Sequence record: NC_061449.1 | Strand: one strand, 5' to 3' | Length of the DNA stretch: 64,000 bases | Part shown: positions 3,001-56,579 of the stretch, in pieces | Numbering within the stretch: position 1 is the first letter of the stretch | Layout: the number at the start of each line of letters is the position of its first letter | Made by a program: the position numbers and the translations under genes | Notes under the pieces: model-generated | Seen by the model: the letters and a program-made list of their open reading frames with translations, nothing else | Database searches by the model: none | What the model was told of the DNA's origin: nothing

Positions 3001-4077
3001 ACGAGCAGTCACGGTGTAGGTCTCTTTCTGCTTATAGAACAGTGTGTCTGCACCAACGATAGAGATTGATACCAGCTCGTCGTCAGGCACGAAGGCGTTC
3101 TTAATCAGCAGGTCGTAGGTAGCAGTTACCCAGTTACCGTAGACAGGGTCGCGCTTACGTGCAGTCACTTTCAGCACAACGTCAGCAGCGAGGTCAGGTG
3201 CAGACACTGTACCATCCTGCGCAATAGTCACACCGATAACGTTTTCTTCGATGGACCACTCAATGCCGGTAGGGTTGTGCTCGATACTGTTCGACCACTC
3301 GGCATCGATGTTCAGTTTGACGCTACTGTTATCCGACATGTAGCTTGCATTACCGGGAAGGCTGATGCGCAAGTTCATCAGGTGAGGAGATTCCCACTCG
3401 ACGTTATCAGAAGTAGGCTTAACCCACTTACCGATATACTTGTTCGGGTTAACAGGGTCCTGATCGACAATCGCCAGAACATACCCAGGCTCAGGCTGGT
3501 TAGAGCTTGCGACTTCAACGAACGCCAGAGAGTTCAAGCGAATCATTGTACGAGCATAATCAGGGTGATCATGGTTCGTAGGATAACGCGCATCACTCAT
3601 GCGTGGGTCAGAGCTTGACACAGCAATAGGCATCGTAGGGTCAGTAGGCTCGGTCTTCGTCACAATGCTGCCGAGACGGCTTGGCGTAGCATGTGGGATT
3701 TCCAGATCGCCAACTTCAATACCCAGGTCAGCAGCGTTCTCTACAACGCGACGGAAGAACTGTTTCTGACCGAACAACTGCGAGTAGTCAGTAACGGTCA
3801 CCCAAGAGCCACGGTGATTACCGTCAGACACAGCAGATGTACGACGCAGCACATACTGATACTGCGGGCTACCTGTGTTGGCATCAATCCAAATCAGGTT
3901 GTACGGCTTTTCAGAAAACGATGGCTCGGTCATTGACACAACAACCTGATGCACTTCCGTTTGATCGTTCGCGTTAGGACGGAACAGGAAAGTGATTGGG
4001 TTACGTGGCGTCAGACCGCGAGTACGAGCCAATGCGATATACTGTTTAGCAAAGCCGTCGATCGTGGTTACGCTCAT
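67..4077 (-). CDS. Large Ig-like (Big-type) repeat virion fibre/adhesin protein, 1336 aa
   Basis: Thr/Val/Ser-rich tandem ~95-aa repeats (e.g. 'L.I.G..SV.E....Y...ATYSDG', 'SYTENGITKTATL' twice). N-terminal region is paralogous to the 4074 and 4717 ORFs; C-terminal domain is paralogous to the 5390 ORF. Lies near the tail sheath gene. Confidence 0.8.
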   Translation of the reverse strand: MSVTTIDGFAKQYIALARTRGLTPRNPITFLFRPNANDQTEVHQVVVSMTEPSFSEKPYNLIWIDANTGSPQYQYVLRRTSAVSDGNHRGSWVTVTDYSQLFGQKQFFRRVVENAADLGIEVGDLEIPHATPSRLGSIVTKTEPTDPTMPIAVSSSDPRMSDARYPTNHDHPDYARTMIRLNSLAFVEVASSNQPEPGYVLAIVDQDPVNPNKYIGKWVKPTSDNVEWESPHLMNLRISLPGNASYMSDNSSVKLNIDAEWSNSIEHNPTGIEWSIEENVIGVTIAQDGTVSAPDLAADVVLKVTARKRDPVYGNWVTATYDLLIKNAFVPDDELVSISIVGADTLFYKQKETYTVTARYKSGAVATVVPTNFTVDKTDAVSLVGLQGTAKKVSTDTVAKLTATYLYNGITYTATKNVTVKAQLITLLEVLGSATIASQASEAYTFKITWSNGDTEMITPNSFTAAPTTYTTISGNVVTAKKETTQDRTVVLTATYITADQNISGNKTVTILKEDIPVTLSSLAIQGANTIRSEESANYTFLATYSDGHTKLVDPTTFSADRLDIVTIVNKTVNAGKVSSDIPVKLSASYTENGITKTATLDITIVNVVPVVDLSSIKIVGPSSVQEKTTTPYTVLATYSDGHTATISPNEFRLQQTSNYATFANSELVVGAVPIANTSVTLYASYTENGITKTATLPVSIVGNPPTVTSLEIRGNDSMNENTTAQFTAWEILSDGTDRQVASPTWSVIQGSAVASIAQTGVLSAGEVTQDTTVLIRATYDGRNAQKSVLVKNIIVITLLSVQPAAPSPVFDFGTASGVTRDLHSTLTFSDSTTREGTSGELSYTLSTAAQEYFEIVAGGTTGWRIRTKKALSGFYGTLTFQLNVAATVGTVSKTGNVQFTVVGPTDDVSKVEIIGNDSVTEGTVSGDYFVRVTRLSGAVNEYASLPTWSLPQGAAYATLSVGSTSTRVKLTVPANSISQNQTATLRAANVTVDGQTYAPEKVVTLINQAATITKRELIGPTAVNKGETGTYILRLTFSDNTTVDLTPVITRSSGSTTGFTFNGNNTITGNTVSTTQTAIITGTASYNSQSQTANLTVTNTPAPPTPDSVTITGSASIIGGVTTAYTATATLSDGTTPDVTADSGTTWAVAVKSGTATGLSVVGGSLKSNAVTADAVVTITVTYVKNGKTVTATKDVTLKPQQSSDLGARFGYHSKIKSTSGYDAQFVQGLQTALTTTGQQLLNCPGNTSTSSNNVFFYVAWPKSLGYGYFVESVQGFAGSWDGALEFDDFNFAGPAEVTINGVDYVIYRNDFPFDGLAYTFKLTYGSSNPGSGIA

Positions 4078-53545: not shown

Positions 53546-54835
53546 TTACTTCTTCTTTTTCTTTTTCTTTTTCTTCTCTTTGGGTTCGTCGTCTTCGTCG
53601 TCGTTGCCCAAATCAACCACCAGCTTGCCGCTATAGATATCAGACATTGTTCTGGTAATGCCTGTTTCCAGCATGATATCCGCAGGTACCGATGTAGAGT
53701 TGAATGCTACTTCGGCTTCTGCTAATGCTGATTGCAGATATACCAGACTGACCAGATTGACTTTGATTTTGTCTTTCTTGGTCATGTTCATAAACATCTT
53801 GAGGCCCGCTGACTGCCACTTATTCGTTTCGGCGTAATGCCCCAGCACACCGTGAATGATCCAACGCGCTTTCGCTACTACTGCACGAGGGTTGTTCGCT
53901 TCACGCAGGAACTGAATAACACCAATCAGGTCCATACTGAGATAAGCACCAATCATCTGAACTGCTTTCGCTTCCATGTCGATTTCTGGATCAGCAGCAG
54001 CGAGTTCTGCAACTAGGTTCTTATCAAAGTCTTCGCCGCCTTTAACAGATGAGTAAATGTTTTGCAGCATGGTGATTGCACCACGCATCTGACCACCAGC
54101 GTATTCTGCAACCTGATACAATGCCGCCTCTGCTTTCTCACGCGCTTTGTCTTTCTTCGGCATGATATCCAGCTTCTCGCCAATCTCAACCAGACGCTTA
54201 TGAATCACGTCAGTTGGAATAGGTCTGATAGGCAGTTGCGTCATACGACTGATCATCGTGCCTTTCATCTTCTCTGGGTTCGTTGTTACGAAGATGAAGA
54301 CAACGTGCGCTGGTGGCTGTTCGGTAATCTTGAGCAGCTTGGATTCAGCAGCACTGGACATGAGGTGCGATTCATCGAAGATAAACACGCGACGTTTGAA
54401 CATAGGGCTTAACGGTGCAGAGTCAACGATCTTCTGTGAACCGTCTACTTTACCTGCATCGCCACCCATATCAAATTCTTGTACGTCCATGTGACCGCCA
54501 GTTTCCATAAGCTGACATGAACGACACTTGCCACACGCAGAGAACGAATCGCAGTTGATGTACTTCGCTACCAGACGTGCGAACGTTGTCTTACCAGAAC
54601 CGAGGTGGCCGGTAATGATCATCGTTGACGGAATCGTTTTCGACTTCTGCCAACCTTTCATGATCTTAACGATGTGGTCTTGACCAACGTAGTCTTCGAT
54701 ACGTTTAGGTCGGAACTGATCAGCAAAGTTAACCGTAGTCAACTCAACTGACTCAGAAGAACCGCTTTTCTTTTTCGATGGCTTATCGTCACCGAAGGAA
54801 CGCGCTTTCTTCTTTTTCTTTTCTTCTTTCGCCAT
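53546..54835 (-). CDS. dnaX: Clamp loader ATPase, DNA Pol III gamma/tau-like
   Basis: 'FRP.......GQ.H', Walker A 'GHLGSGKTT.AR', Zn module 'C....ACGKCRSC', 'FIFDESH.M' and 'LLK..EQPP...VFI..TT......TM.SR'. Confidence 0.92.
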   Translation of the reverse strand: MAKEEKKKKKARSFGDDKPSKKKSGSSESVELTTVNFADQFRPKRIEDYVGQDHIVKIMKGWQKSKTIPSTMIITGHLGSGKTTFARLVAKYINCDSFSACGKCRSCQLMETGGHMDVQEFDMGGDAGKVDGSQKIVDSAPLSPMFKRRVFIFDESHLMSSAAESKLLKITEQPPAHVVFIFVTTNPEKMKGTMISRMTQLPIRPIPTDVIHKRLVEIGEKLDIMPKKDKAREKAEAALYQVAEYAGGQMRGAITMLQNIYSSVKGGEDFDKNLVAELAAADPEIDMEAKAVQMIGAYLSMDLIGVIQFLREANNPRAVVAKARWIIHGVLGHYAETNKWQSAGLKMFMNMTKKDKIKVNLVSLVYLQSALAEAEVAFNSTSVPADIMLETGITRTMSDIYSGKLVVDLGNDDEDDEPKEKKKKKKKKK

Positions 54836-54980
54836 TTTACTTTCGCCCTATAGTTTGATGCGTTACATCAGGTATTTACAGTATTTGGACAAAAAGAAAG
54901 GACCACATCCAAAAATGGAGGGTCCTTATGGTGTTACAATAAGTTTTGGATGGTAACGCATCGGCAGTGGGCGCTGTCGA

Positions 54981-55178
54981 TTAGGCAAAGCACATCTCCC
55001 AGCGAGGTACAACGCGGAAGAAGTGCTTAAAGTTGGACGGTGGATTGTTCTTGATTGATTCAAGTTTCTGTTCCACAACGTCGTAATCTTTTATGCCACT
55101 CTCAACAGTGTGAGTGGTGAATGTACCGTCAGCCTGAATCAAGTCGGCGACAACACGGTAGCTTGGTTTACGAAGCAT
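54981..55178 (-). CDS. Hypothetical protein, 65 aa
   Basis: AGGAG RBS. Confidence 0.6.
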   Translation of the reverse strand: MLRKPSYRVVADLIQADGTFTTHTVESGIKDYDVVEQKLESIKNNPPSNFKHFFRVVPRWEMCFA

Positions 55179-55271
55179 CTATTCTCCTGTGCTAAAATTT
55201 CTCGTTCTTCTGAATTATGTTTACAGTTTACTGCGAGTAGTCACACAAGAATAAAGTCAGAAAAGTCTTAA

Positions 55272-55508
55272 ACTCCAATAGGCTCTCAGAGAAAACATAT
55301 TGGAGTCCACCCTCGCCAGATGACGGTCTAGCCAGGGCTTTCTCCCCGTGTCTTTCGAGTGCACCGACACGGTAGCGCTTGCGGTCTTACGCTCTCTGCG
55401 GCAGCGAACGTTTCGGCAGGTAGCGGAGTTCGCAGCCTAGAGCAGCCGCTTTTCGGCCATAGCGATAACGCGGTGTTACGCTACTTGGCCTAGGGTGACT
55501 CAGGGCCG
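55272..55508. ncRNA. Candidate structured non-coding RNA or cis element
   Basis: ORF-free and GC-richer than its flanks. Nested inverted repeats: 55303-13/55492-501, 55346-52/55366-72, 55391-400/55431-43, 55455-69/55475-90. Confidence 0.45.
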
Positions 55509-55516
55509 AGTCTGTA

Positions 55517-55568
55517 CAAAAAAGAGTTCGGCCTATCCCCAAATTCGGCAAAAGAAACAGGCCGAACT
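55517..55568 (-). terminator. Probable terminator of the HAD-gene operon
   Basis: 10-bp perfect inverted repeat (agttcggcct/aggccgaact) followed by T6 on the minus strand. Confidence 0.55.
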
Positions 55569-55647
55569 AAACAGTCAGCGCAAACTCCATATGCACTGTT
55601 TTGTACTGTTATAAATTATGAAACATTCCGAAATAATCAGACAATTC

Positions 55648-56235
55648 TTAGTTCAACATCGGACGCAGTTGTTTTAAGAAATGTTGCTTATCGAACGACG
55701 TGATTCGATGCGGATGATCAATGTGTTCGTTCCATCCTTTGGTGAACAGCAGCACGTTACGAGGCAACACCAGTTGGTCGCCGACTCGTGTGAACTTGTC
55801 ACGCACCGCAGTAACAGGATTGTCGTCAACCAGAATCCAAGTACCTTCACCGTACTTCTCATTCAGGTAAGCAATCTTGTCAGGGTGTTGGCGACTGTCC
55901 AGAACGTCGATGTGATCGAACAGCGACAGGTGCTTCTCCATAACCTTACGCGTGTTGCGTTCGCCTTTCGGGTGATAGCCTCGATGCGTACAAATGCCAA
56001 CACTGAATCCTTCATGCACCAACAGCGCAACGGTCTGGATGAAGTAGTCACGCATGTTGGCTTCTAGCATGAAGCGTCCATCTTCCAGCATGTCAATGAA
56101 AGGCTGCTTGCCGTTCTCTGGCGTGATGTATGTATCGGTGCCTGGGTAGATGCCCCAGTTCATCAGATAACACAACATGAAGTTATGCGTATCAAACGCC
56201 GTGTCGTCCATGTCAAAGAAAATATGTTTGATCAT
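55648..56235 (-). CDS. HAD-superfamily 5'(3')-deoxyribonucleotidase-like phosphatase
   Basis: Motif I 'FFDMDDT', motif II 'ICTHR', Lys in 'DK' and motif IV 'LVDDNP'. Confidence 0.85.
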   Translation of the reverse strand: MIKHIFFDMDDTAFDTHNFMLCYLMNWGIYPGTDTYITPENGKQPFIDMLEDGRFMLEANMRDYFIQTVALLVHEGFSVGICTHRGYHPKGERNTRKVMEKHLSLFDHIDVLDSRQHPDKIAYLNEKYGEGTWILVDDNPVTAVRDKFTRVGDQLVLPRNVLLFTKGWNEHIDHPHRITSFDKQHFLKQLRPMLN

Positions 56236-56579
56236 TAATGCCTCGTGCTTTTAACTACCAGAGGAATATCGTTGATGAAGGCTAAGGTCAACAACTCGCT
56301 GTTATAGCGCAGTCGCATTTCATCGGCGTTCATCACAACAATAATGTCGGCGAGAGGATCTACCTTGAAGATTGGAACCTCGATAAGCGTGACGGCATCT
56401 GAGTCTTCTTCGTCGTTTACGACAAAGTAGCCGCCATACATTAACACCGTGTCACCGGAATCGACAAGATGACCAACGATTGCATCGTCACCGTCCATGA
56501 TCATGTGCAGTGGCTGGTCGATGTAATAACCGCTGTCATCGTCTGCTCCGAATTCGAAATCGAAGTCCTCGTCGCCCAT
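56235..56579 (-). CDS. Acidic hypothetical protein
   Basis: Coupled to the HAD gene. Confidence 0.55.
   Translation of the reverse strand: MGDEDFDFEFGADDDSGYYIDQPLHMIMDGDDAIVGHLVDSGDTVLMYGGYFVVNDEEDSDAVTLIEVPIFKVDPLADIIVVMNADEMRLRYNSELLTLAFINDIPLVVKSTRH

Follow-up and report, generated by a model that had tools for sequence, protein, structure and literature searches.

A conserved structured RNA with a predicted pseudoknot and competing pairings in the replication gene module of 'hairy' jumbo phages

The window analysed here, a stretch of 64,000 nucleotides (nt) of record NC_061449.1, is identical to the corresponding part of Erwinia phage pEa_SNUABM_17 (SNU17; Alexandravirus, 263,916 bp), such that a window position is the position in the phage record minus 124,000. 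Two of its minus-strand genes, gp211 (55648-56235) and gp210 (54981-55178), are separated by a gap of 469 nt (55179-55647), and this gap encodes a real, evolutionarily conserved structured RNA. As modelled with a covariance model, an alignment and a consensus fold, the RNA spans 55253-55517 on the minus strand (~265 nt; RNA position n is window position 55518-n), the same strand as all of the flanking genes. An initial annotation, made from the letters alone, had flagged 55272-55508 as a highly structured, GC-rich, non-coding element just past a minus-strand terminator, and as a candidate novel non-coding RNA (ncRNA) or switch of no known class. That core reading is supported: the sequence pieces quoted there are all present, the GC content has a local peak of 0.605 at 55300-55499 against about 0.40-0.50 around it, no conserved open reading frame (ORF) occupies the gap between the annotated genes, and a hairpin followed by six U residues lies at 55518-55567.

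The 195-aa product of gp211 matches PHROG 415, 'polynucleotide kinase' (E 1e-11), as well as HAD-like phosphatases of many jumbo phages, and has no Pfam match; the gene is the constant upstream neighbour of the structured RNA. The 65-aa product of gp210 belongs to no family, and downstream of it lies a clamp-loader gene (53546-54835, minus strand). Phages Y3, AD1, JA11/JA29 and Yoloswag belong to the same 'hairy Myoviridae' group of jumbo phages (PMC6143709), and the hairy jumbo group encodes sigma-like factors, not its own polymerase (PMC7412058). A Chimallivirus-type RNA polymerase of the phage's own was rejected, as no Rpb1 domain was found in the phage genome.

BLASTN matches the gap in 46 phage records (Alexandravirus, Sasquatchvirus and Snuvirus), with identities from 100% to about 70%, and compensatory change is abundant among these homologues. 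The gap equals or exceeds the flanking genes in conservation. Its identity to AD1 is 94.8%, compared with 87.0% for the surrounding 5 kb; one metagenomic relative differs by three substitutions and one deletion across 55108-55629, and by 126 letters across the whole 2.2-kb stretch; and 49% of columns are invariant in the RNA core, compared with 25-54% in neighbouring genes. A small protein-coding gene was considered and rejected, as no ORF is conserved in frame and length among the relatives, the longest ORFs varying in position, frame and length on both strands. Close relatives are separated by 1-2-nt indels within the RNA.

The folding energy of the element is lower than that of shuffled controls on both strands (z = -2.19 for the plus and -3.54 for the minus strand), and the RNAalifold consensus of a MAFFT alignment of 20 sequences reaches -53.7 kcal/mol on the minus strand compared with -32.7 on the plus strand. 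Nine helices were curated and used to build the covariance model R1, which scores 297 bits at record positions 179253-179517(-), the sole copy in the SNU17 genome. When 22 distinct sequences are aligned with R1, 95.6% of helix cells are paired, compared with 82.2% in shuffles, and 39 of 62 pairs are changed on both sides, a number reached by none of 500 shuffles (18.7 +/- 2.4); sliding the partners by 1-3 columns gives at most 12 such pairs. This alignment is fitted to the model; an independent, unfitted run of MAFFT and RNAalifold gives both-sided changes in 19 of the 62 pairs.

The strand, left open in the initial annotation, is the minus strand: its helices contain 132 G.U cells and 5 A.C cells, and the reverse would hold were the plus strand the RNA. 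Both of the generic marks of a conserved structured RNA, compensatory change above controls and strand asymmetry, are therefore present. The same data bear on the proposal that the element acts as DNA, as a site for protein binding, recombination or packaging, or is a chance GC-rich spacer. Short inverted repeats (TCGGCC/GGCCGA) do recur in the gap, but DNA hairpins show no such strand asymmetry, so that tolerance of G.U and not of A.C counts against a DNA-level role, as do the pairs changed on both sides and a pseudoknot (described below) that is kept with different sequences; we consider this explanation the most improbable of those weighed here.

R1 finds the RNA at a fixed gene position, after the HAD/polynucleotide-kinase-like gene and before the clamp loader, in one copy per genome. 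Matches score 47.9 bits in Rivsvirus SNUABM_5, 40.2 bits in Yoloswag, 32-33 bits in Salmondvirus JA29 and JA11 (to the 3' half) and 23 bits in Yersinia phage fHe-Yen9-02, and metagenomic contigs L049 and L148 are also matched, together with near-identical uncultured genomes. By these sequence matches the family spans at least seven genus-level lineages of 'hairy' jumbo myoviruses, with members among the Alexandra-, Sasquatch-, Snu-, Rivs-, Yoloswag- and Salmondvirus, in fHe-Yen9-02 and in metagenomic relatives. The RNA appears confined to one group of giant phages of Erwinia, Dickeya and Yersinia: searches of 151 sampled gammaproteobacterial genomes, the complete E. coli genomes and PLSDB plasmids with R1 gave no match. 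The loose pattern GTAAG..GGGGAG..ACTCCAA left one new locus, L148, among the matches listed from viral and genome collections once these were filtered for a partner to hairpin P8 (see below), and in genome contigs it revealed no further locus among the matches listed, a weak negative as these are mostly chance matches. The RNA is absent from Eowyn, Vibrio 2 TSL-2019 and YerA41, in which the HAD-like gene is present with no intergenic gap after it, and it is present in Salmondvirus, from which gp210 is missing.

The architecture comprises at least seven helices, the pseudoknot and several invariant unpaired motifs, and its parts are given here from the 5' end, all on the minus strand. Pa (55497-55512) is a small hairpin, GACUC/GAGUC, with almost no variation, and GGCCGA at 55453-55458 is a possible alternative partner. 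The hexamer TCGGCC/GGCCGA occurs five times within 55449-55567 (at 55449, 55504, 55528, 55546 in partial form, and 55561), allowing several alternative pairings among the upstream terminator-like hairpin, Pa and the 3' end of P2; as no copy varies, covariation cannot choose among them. Hairpin P2 (55455-55490) has a conserved loop, GUAACACCGCGU, with four pairs changed on both sides and several G.U changes. It corresponds to a stem in the initial annotation of which ggcca-tagcg/cgcta-tggcc stands and the taac/gtta extension, not kept in Y3, does not. In pEp_SNUABM_52, otherwise near-identical to Y3, the conserved loop sequence of P2 carries a 10-nt tandem duplication (GTAACACCGC). This 5' domain of Pa and P2 is variable, with other hairpins in its place in Rivsvirus and Yoloswag.

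Helix P3 (55446-55449 with 55381-55384) encloses the P4 arm (55391-55443), whose terminal loop holds the near-invariant GCUACCUG (55417-55424); across P3 and P4 (helices 3-6) 17 of 18 pairs are changed on both sides. In this arm the gctct/agagc part of a stem proposed earlier is retained as P4a, and its ctgcg/cgcag part is displaced by a covarying GCGAAC/GTTCGC pairing (UCAGGU/ACCUGA, GCGGG/CCCGC and others in relatives). The junction motif GUAAGAC (55384-55390) is retained except in the most distant lineage, which has GUAAG. Beyond the pseudoknot is hairpin P7 (55309-55338), with an invariant hexaloop CCGUCA (55321-55326) and both-sided changes in 8 of 11 pairs; a 5' hairpin, not P7, carries the CCGUCA loop motif in Rivsvirus and Yoloswag. 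The long-range closing helix that had been proposed for the element (gagtc-c-accct/agggt-gactc) is not borne out, as its ACCCT arm is deleted or changed in 12 of 20 aligned relatives (among others phB78, SNU30, SNU22, SNU28, Y3, pEp52 and the Snuviruses) and AGGGT pairs locally with GCCCT in the covarying P7. Hairpin P8 (55270-55308; ACUCCAAUA ... UAUUGGAGU) contains the 9-bp actccaata/tattggagt hairpin noted initially, which has comparative support; its distal pairs covary in JA29 and fHe-Yen9-02. The 3' tail (55253-55269) is conserved as UUUAAGAyUnnUCUkACUUU; its possible partners are the 5' end (GUACAGAC) and the GUAAGAC junction, the candidate pairs being mostly invariant. Overall, the 3' half (junction, P6, GGGGAG, P7 and P8) is universal and the 5' hairpins are replaceable.

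Between the P4 arm and P7 lies a predicted H-type pseudoknot (55346-55378), which was not part of the initial annotation, in which the junction GCGCU (55374-55378) pairs with GGUGC (55361-55365), the first bases of the P6 loop. The P6 stem itself (55366-55372 with 55346-55352), recognised earlier as ccgtgtc/gacacgg, has comparative support, 6 of its 7 pairs being changed on both sides. The geometry is classically H-type, with a first connecting loop of 1-6 nt and an A-rich third loop (55353-55360 in SNU17) of 6-10 nt across lineages. All 11 lineages tested have a pseudoknot stem of 5-7 bp, formed by differing paired sequences: GCGCU/GGUGC or GGCGC in Alexandravirus, ACGUU/GACGU in Y3, AGCGC/GCGCU in Snuvirus, GGGCGCC/GGCGCCU in Rivsvirus, GGGCGCG/CGCGCCU in Yoloswag, GGUGCG/CGCACU in JA29, GGUGUG/CGCACC in L148 and AAGCGC/GCGCUU in fHe-Yen9-02. 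A cross-lineage control discriminates weakly (5.2 for cognate versus 4.3 for non-cognate strands) because all versions are GC-rich near-palindromes, and the support therefore comes from position-specific double changes; the pseudoknot is well supported by these comparisons, but not proven. A pseudoknot and conserved unpaired nucleotides, in an RNA that as modelled starts immediately after a terminator U-run, might also describe a catalytic RNA, self-cleaving or other, that itself sets its 5' end at that point. However, no Rfam ribozyme family matches even at E<=10, and conservation of the RNA is lowest in the 5' domain, which would adjoin the cleavage site and is replaced in Yoloswag and Rivsvirus, such that we consider a ribozyme highly unlikely.

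The 3' half of the RNA contains three short segments that can pair in two mutually exclusive ways. Segment X (55342-55345) is a GGAG directly 3' of the pseudoknot, within the conserved GGGGAG; segment Z (55273-55276) is a second GGAG, in the 3' strand of P8; and segment Y (55302-55305) is the CUCC that serves as partner to both, X:Y lengthening P7 and Y:Z forming P8. The initial annotation had proposed two exclusive folds, and a competition does exist, although not between P8 and a closing helix; it is CUCC that pairs with either of two GGAG segments. Y is complementary to both X and Z in 16 of 16 sequences, and X:Y continues P7 across a purine-rich internal loop of 0-3 nt, two positions of which have become Watson-Crick in Y3 through changes on both sides. 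In JA29, L148 and fHe-Yen9-02 X:Y extends to 8-11 continuous pairs, X and Z form direct repeats of 7-10 nt (identical 10-mers in fHe-Yen9-02), and every pair in either duplex is Watson-Crick. Constrained folding places the Y:Z state 5-12 kcal/mol below X:Y in 13 of 13 lineages tested, and the GGGGAG is exposed in this favoured fold. As X and Y are made before Z, they could pair while transcription is under way, with Z displacing this duplex later. Mutually exclusive conserved pairings of this kind are what is looked for as the expression platform of riboswitches and cis-regulatory leaders, both duplexes covary in distant lineages, and a competition between pairings that is conserved and covaries is characteristic of switches.

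The 3' strand of P8 contains, besides the Z segment, a UUG that opens a short and variable ORF (MEFKTFLTLFLCDYSQ in SNU17, from 55270-55278(-) to about 55228). Alexandra-, Sasquatch- and Snuvirus share similar first nine residues, and in Yoloswag the ORF runs in frame into gp203. A functional peptide (MEFK..LTL..) is nonetheless unlikely, with 3 codons remaining in SNU3 and 4-6 in Salmondvirus and fHe-Yen9-02. Yoloswag also has a second CUCCAAU...UUGGAG hairpin (at about 3621-3650 in its sequence) directly over the gp203 ribosome-binding site, where, to judge from its position, a P8-like pairing sequesters a translation start; this would be a case of translational control in the phage group.

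The transcription signals around the RNA are less uniform than its structure. Directly 5' of it is T1 (55518-55567, minus strand), an 8-bp GC-rich hairpin with a 26-nt loop and then U6, which is either a terminator or attenuator of the upstream gene or a part of the primary transcript. The T1 stem covaries in Y3 and Snuvirus, and the Yoloswag equivalent, with a 13-bp stem, is flagged as a terminator by scan. A second hairpin with a U-run and a 16-nt loop lies at about 54893-54930(-), and such elements separate genes; a consensus terminator scan misses these hairpins because of their unusually large loops. A leader peptide preceding T1 was rejected, since its start and frame are not conserved across lineages. 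Upstream of T1 in most lineages is a conserved segment W (55582-55592, minus strand; AUAUGGAGUUU), a near copy of the P8 Z strand. At the end of the upstream gene the motif (C/A)TAATTT is conserved in all lineages, where it may be the promoter of the RNA; in SNU17 it overlaps the sole sigma-70-like match (TTGTCT-18-CATAAT, 55610-55644, minus strand), a weak candidate with one match against 0.7 expected. As a promoter class (C/A)TAATTT was rejected, as it is not enriched genome-wide.

A second motif is better defined. CTGTAAA[CT]A, or (A/T)CTGTAAATA, has 35 copies in the 264-kb genome, where about 4 would be expected; most precede a ribosome-binding site and ATG on their own strand by 20-60 nt, and the motif is probably a promoter class read with the phage's own sigma-like factor. 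One copy, CTGTAAACA (55218-55226, minus strand), lies between the RNA and gp210, and another (about 54873-54881, minus strand) precedes the clamp loader, such that terminator-like hairpins alternate with CTGTAAATA promoters in the gene array around the RNA. Salmondvirus and L148 are arranged differently, with no T1 and with a strong terminator about 40-45 nt past P8, followed by the promoter motif and the clamp loader. An antiterminator pairing in JA29 between the P7 tip (GGUUCC) and this downstream terminator is not kept in L148 and is a coincidence.

This gene-like layout in JA29 and L148, in which the RNA lies between a conserved promoter-like motif and a strong terminator, is above all what leads us to rate a free-standing, stable, trans-acting ncRNA almost as likely as the cis-acting switch that we prefer. 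Such an RNA would probably belong to a ribonucleoprotein, and would either be transcribed from the promoter-like motif found where the upstream gene ends or be cut from read-through transcripts; the invariant motifs GGGGAG, GUAAGAC, GCUACCUG and ACCGUCAU-type loops would contact a phage or host protein or RNA; and the competition among X, Y and Z would be a folding or maturation pathway. The number of helices, the pseudoknot and the several invariant unpaired motifs fit this well, as do the exposure of GGGGAG in the favoured fold and the possession by the downstream genes of their own promoter motif. However, no candidate partner gene travels with the RNA (gp210 being missing in Salmondvirus), neither a reverse transcriptase nor RegB is present, most lineages have a terminator hairpin separating the putative promoter from the RNA, and switches are the more typical setting for alternative pairings that are conserved and covary.

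Our best guess, tentatively held, is a conformational switch acting in cis within transcripts of the replication genes, and it is ranked first for the combination of a covarying pairing competition, an adjacent pseudoknot and a same-strand operon punctuated by terminators. The transcripts concerned would extend from the upstream gene, or from the promoter-like motif there, through the RNA into the replication genes. Whether Y stays with X or passes to Z would depend on the state of the pseudoknot, which a protein or small molecule may set by binding, and this choice would in turn expose or hide the Z region with its GGAG and the UUG of the short ORF. The effect downstream might be on translation of the short ORF, on read-through of the operon terminators, or on processing. 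We also count toward this reading the Yoloswag hairpin placed over a real ribosome-binding site, the Salmondvirus terminator shortly after P8 and the conservation of the whole gap.

Several observations weigh against a cis-acting switch. No ligand or protein partner is indicated, and the size of the RNA and its number of invariant single-stranded motifs would equally suit a trans-acting ribonucleoprotein RNA. The terminator precedes the RNA in most lineages and follows it in Salmondvirus, and the promoter motif between the RNA and gp210 means that the downstream genes need not be read through the RNA at all. No conserved U-tract follows P8, no terminator or gene start is consistently coupled to the switch segments, and the UUG ORF is 3-25 codons long in most lineages (3 in SNU3) and lacks a consistent ribosome-binding site.

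Comparison with described RNAs suggests that the family is new, nothing in Rfam or in the literature searched resembling it, and no described RNA of this hairy jumbo phage group was found in that literature. Infernal searches with Rfam 15 (4227 models, including riboswitches, ribozymes, group I/II introns, RNase P, tmRNA, 6S, CsrB/RsmB, ToxI, EAR, GOLLD, ROOL and HEARO) give no match at gathering score in the whole window, and at E<=10 on 55150-55660 only a 14-bit match to ctRNA_p42d (E 5.5), which falls on the terminator hairpin. ARAGORN finds no tRNA or tmRNA gene in the window or in the whole genome, in agreement with the earlier by-eye judgement that the element resembles no tRNA, tmRNA, RNase P, hammerhead or group I/II core. 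The claim of novelty applies to the family, whose mode of action may also be new; several known systems share features with it.

The closest parallels are translational riboswitches and leaders built on H-type pseudoknots, such as preQ1-II and SAM-II. As in the phage RNA, the first loop of the pseudoknot is short and the third rich in A, a GGAG lies on or beside its 3' strand, and an anti-sequence (CUCC) can be handed between two partners; in contrast to them, the phage RNA has no Rfam match, is four to five times larger, and has GGAG segments without a coupled gene start, and its neighbouring genes suggest no ligand. Processive antitermination RNAs, such as put of HK022 (two stem-loops, about 70 nt) and the Bacillus EAR element, which is in Rfam, offer a second comparison: the phage RNA is likewise intergenic in a long same-strand operon with intrinsic terminators, and an action like that of put or EAR would be in cis on the transcribing polymerase, but the EAR model is not matched and the terminator precedes the phage RNA in most lineages.

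The ColE1 primer RNA II is a third parallel, its activity being set by which of three segments (alpha, beta and gamma) pair. The phage RNA is similarly structured, a few hundred nt long and located beside replication functions, with a three-segment pairing choice, and it could be an origin transcript that primes or opens a replication origin in the AT-rich stretch 55179-55269 through an RNA II-like switch. Its place in the replication gene module with a clamp loader nearby, the 100% identity of the AT-rich downstream DNA between SNU17 and AD1, and the three-part alternative pairing speak for such a role. Against it, the extremes of cumulative GC skew fall at 54 kb and 192 kb and not near the RNA at 179 kb, neither iterons nor repeats were noted, and the promoter motif partly explains the conservation of the downstream DNA; unlike RNA II, moreover, the phage RNA has no antisense partner that we could see, no origin signal and no similarity in sequence or to Rfam models. 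We consider an origin transcript improbable, if less so than a ribozyme.

Other RNAs of large phages are more distant. The GOLLD and ROOL RNAs, and ncRNAs mentioned in phiKZ/PA5oct (PMC13282480, PMC7318152), are likewise structured RNAs of large phages without assigned function, but the GOLLD and ROOL models are not matched, and these RNAs are larger and often near tRNAs, whereas the SNU17 genome has no tRNA. Type III antitoxin RNAs and phage pseudo-ToxI consist of tandem 34-36-nt repeats (PMC3475682). ToxI-type RNAs are, like the RNA described here, pseudoknotted and found in phages of Pectobacteriaceae and Erwiniaceae; the present RNA is single-copy, and a ToxI mimic was rejected, as there are no tandem repeats of ~36 nt and no Rfam ToxI match. 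The heptamer GCUACCU, a putative shared feature with ToxI on which the idea of a mimic rests, is absent in Salmondvirus.

Further candidates were also set aside. A sponge of the CsrB/RsmB type would display many GGA motifs in hairpin loops; the phage RNA has only three or four GGAG/GGA sites (W, X, the Y flank and Z), mostly located in stems, and has no Rfam match. Guide RNAs of the retron, diversity-generating retroelement (DGR), IscB/TnpB or bridge-RNA types were rejected with no reverse transcriptase, nuclease or recombinase gene adjacent, and no RVT_1 domain was found anywhere in the genome. A group I intron is disfavoured by the lack of an Intron_gpI match and by Salmondvirus, which has the RNA but not the downstream small ORF. 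Finally, a CRISPR-repeat mimic, in which the P6 stem followed by GGGGAGAAA would resemble a type I-E repeat, does not agree with a stem that varies freely and a loop of 13 nt.

To the very few structured RNAs known from jumbo phages, none of them from the 'hairy myovirus' group, this family adds one with about 40 covarying pairs, a pseudoknot, an alternative pairing and a fixed place in the replication module. Members of the group are under development for biocontrol of fire blight and soft rot, and the RNA offers a testable entry point to the timing and tuning of replication-gene expression in these phages. A bolder version of the switch, which we regard as doubtful, is that the RNA founds a new class of regulatory RNAs in phages, in which the pseudoknot senses a metabolite or protein and flips CUCC between its GGAG partners, gating expression or replication of the DNA-replication module; if true, this would be a new riboswitch-like or RNA II-like control device specific to giant phages.

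Two minor observations concern public sequence data. One straw metatranscriptome contig covers 54578-55484 and ends inside the RNA, with a depth of 7, and is not relied on here. Contigs of close relatives (window 54300-56500) have been assembled from wastewater, manure, straw and 'money' metagenomes, and also occur in public 'RNA' libraries, which evidently contain phage DNA; these are mostly whole-phage contigs, uninformative on transcripts. In deposited genomes small ORFs annotated as 'hypothetical protein' overlap the RNA in Yoloswag (gp204, 3271-3435) and fHe-Yen9-02 (106c, 3265-3471), as does SNUABM_5 gp214 (2630-2755) on the opposite strand. These overlapping annotations are probably spurious, and recognition of the RNA allows them to be corrected in several deposited genomes.

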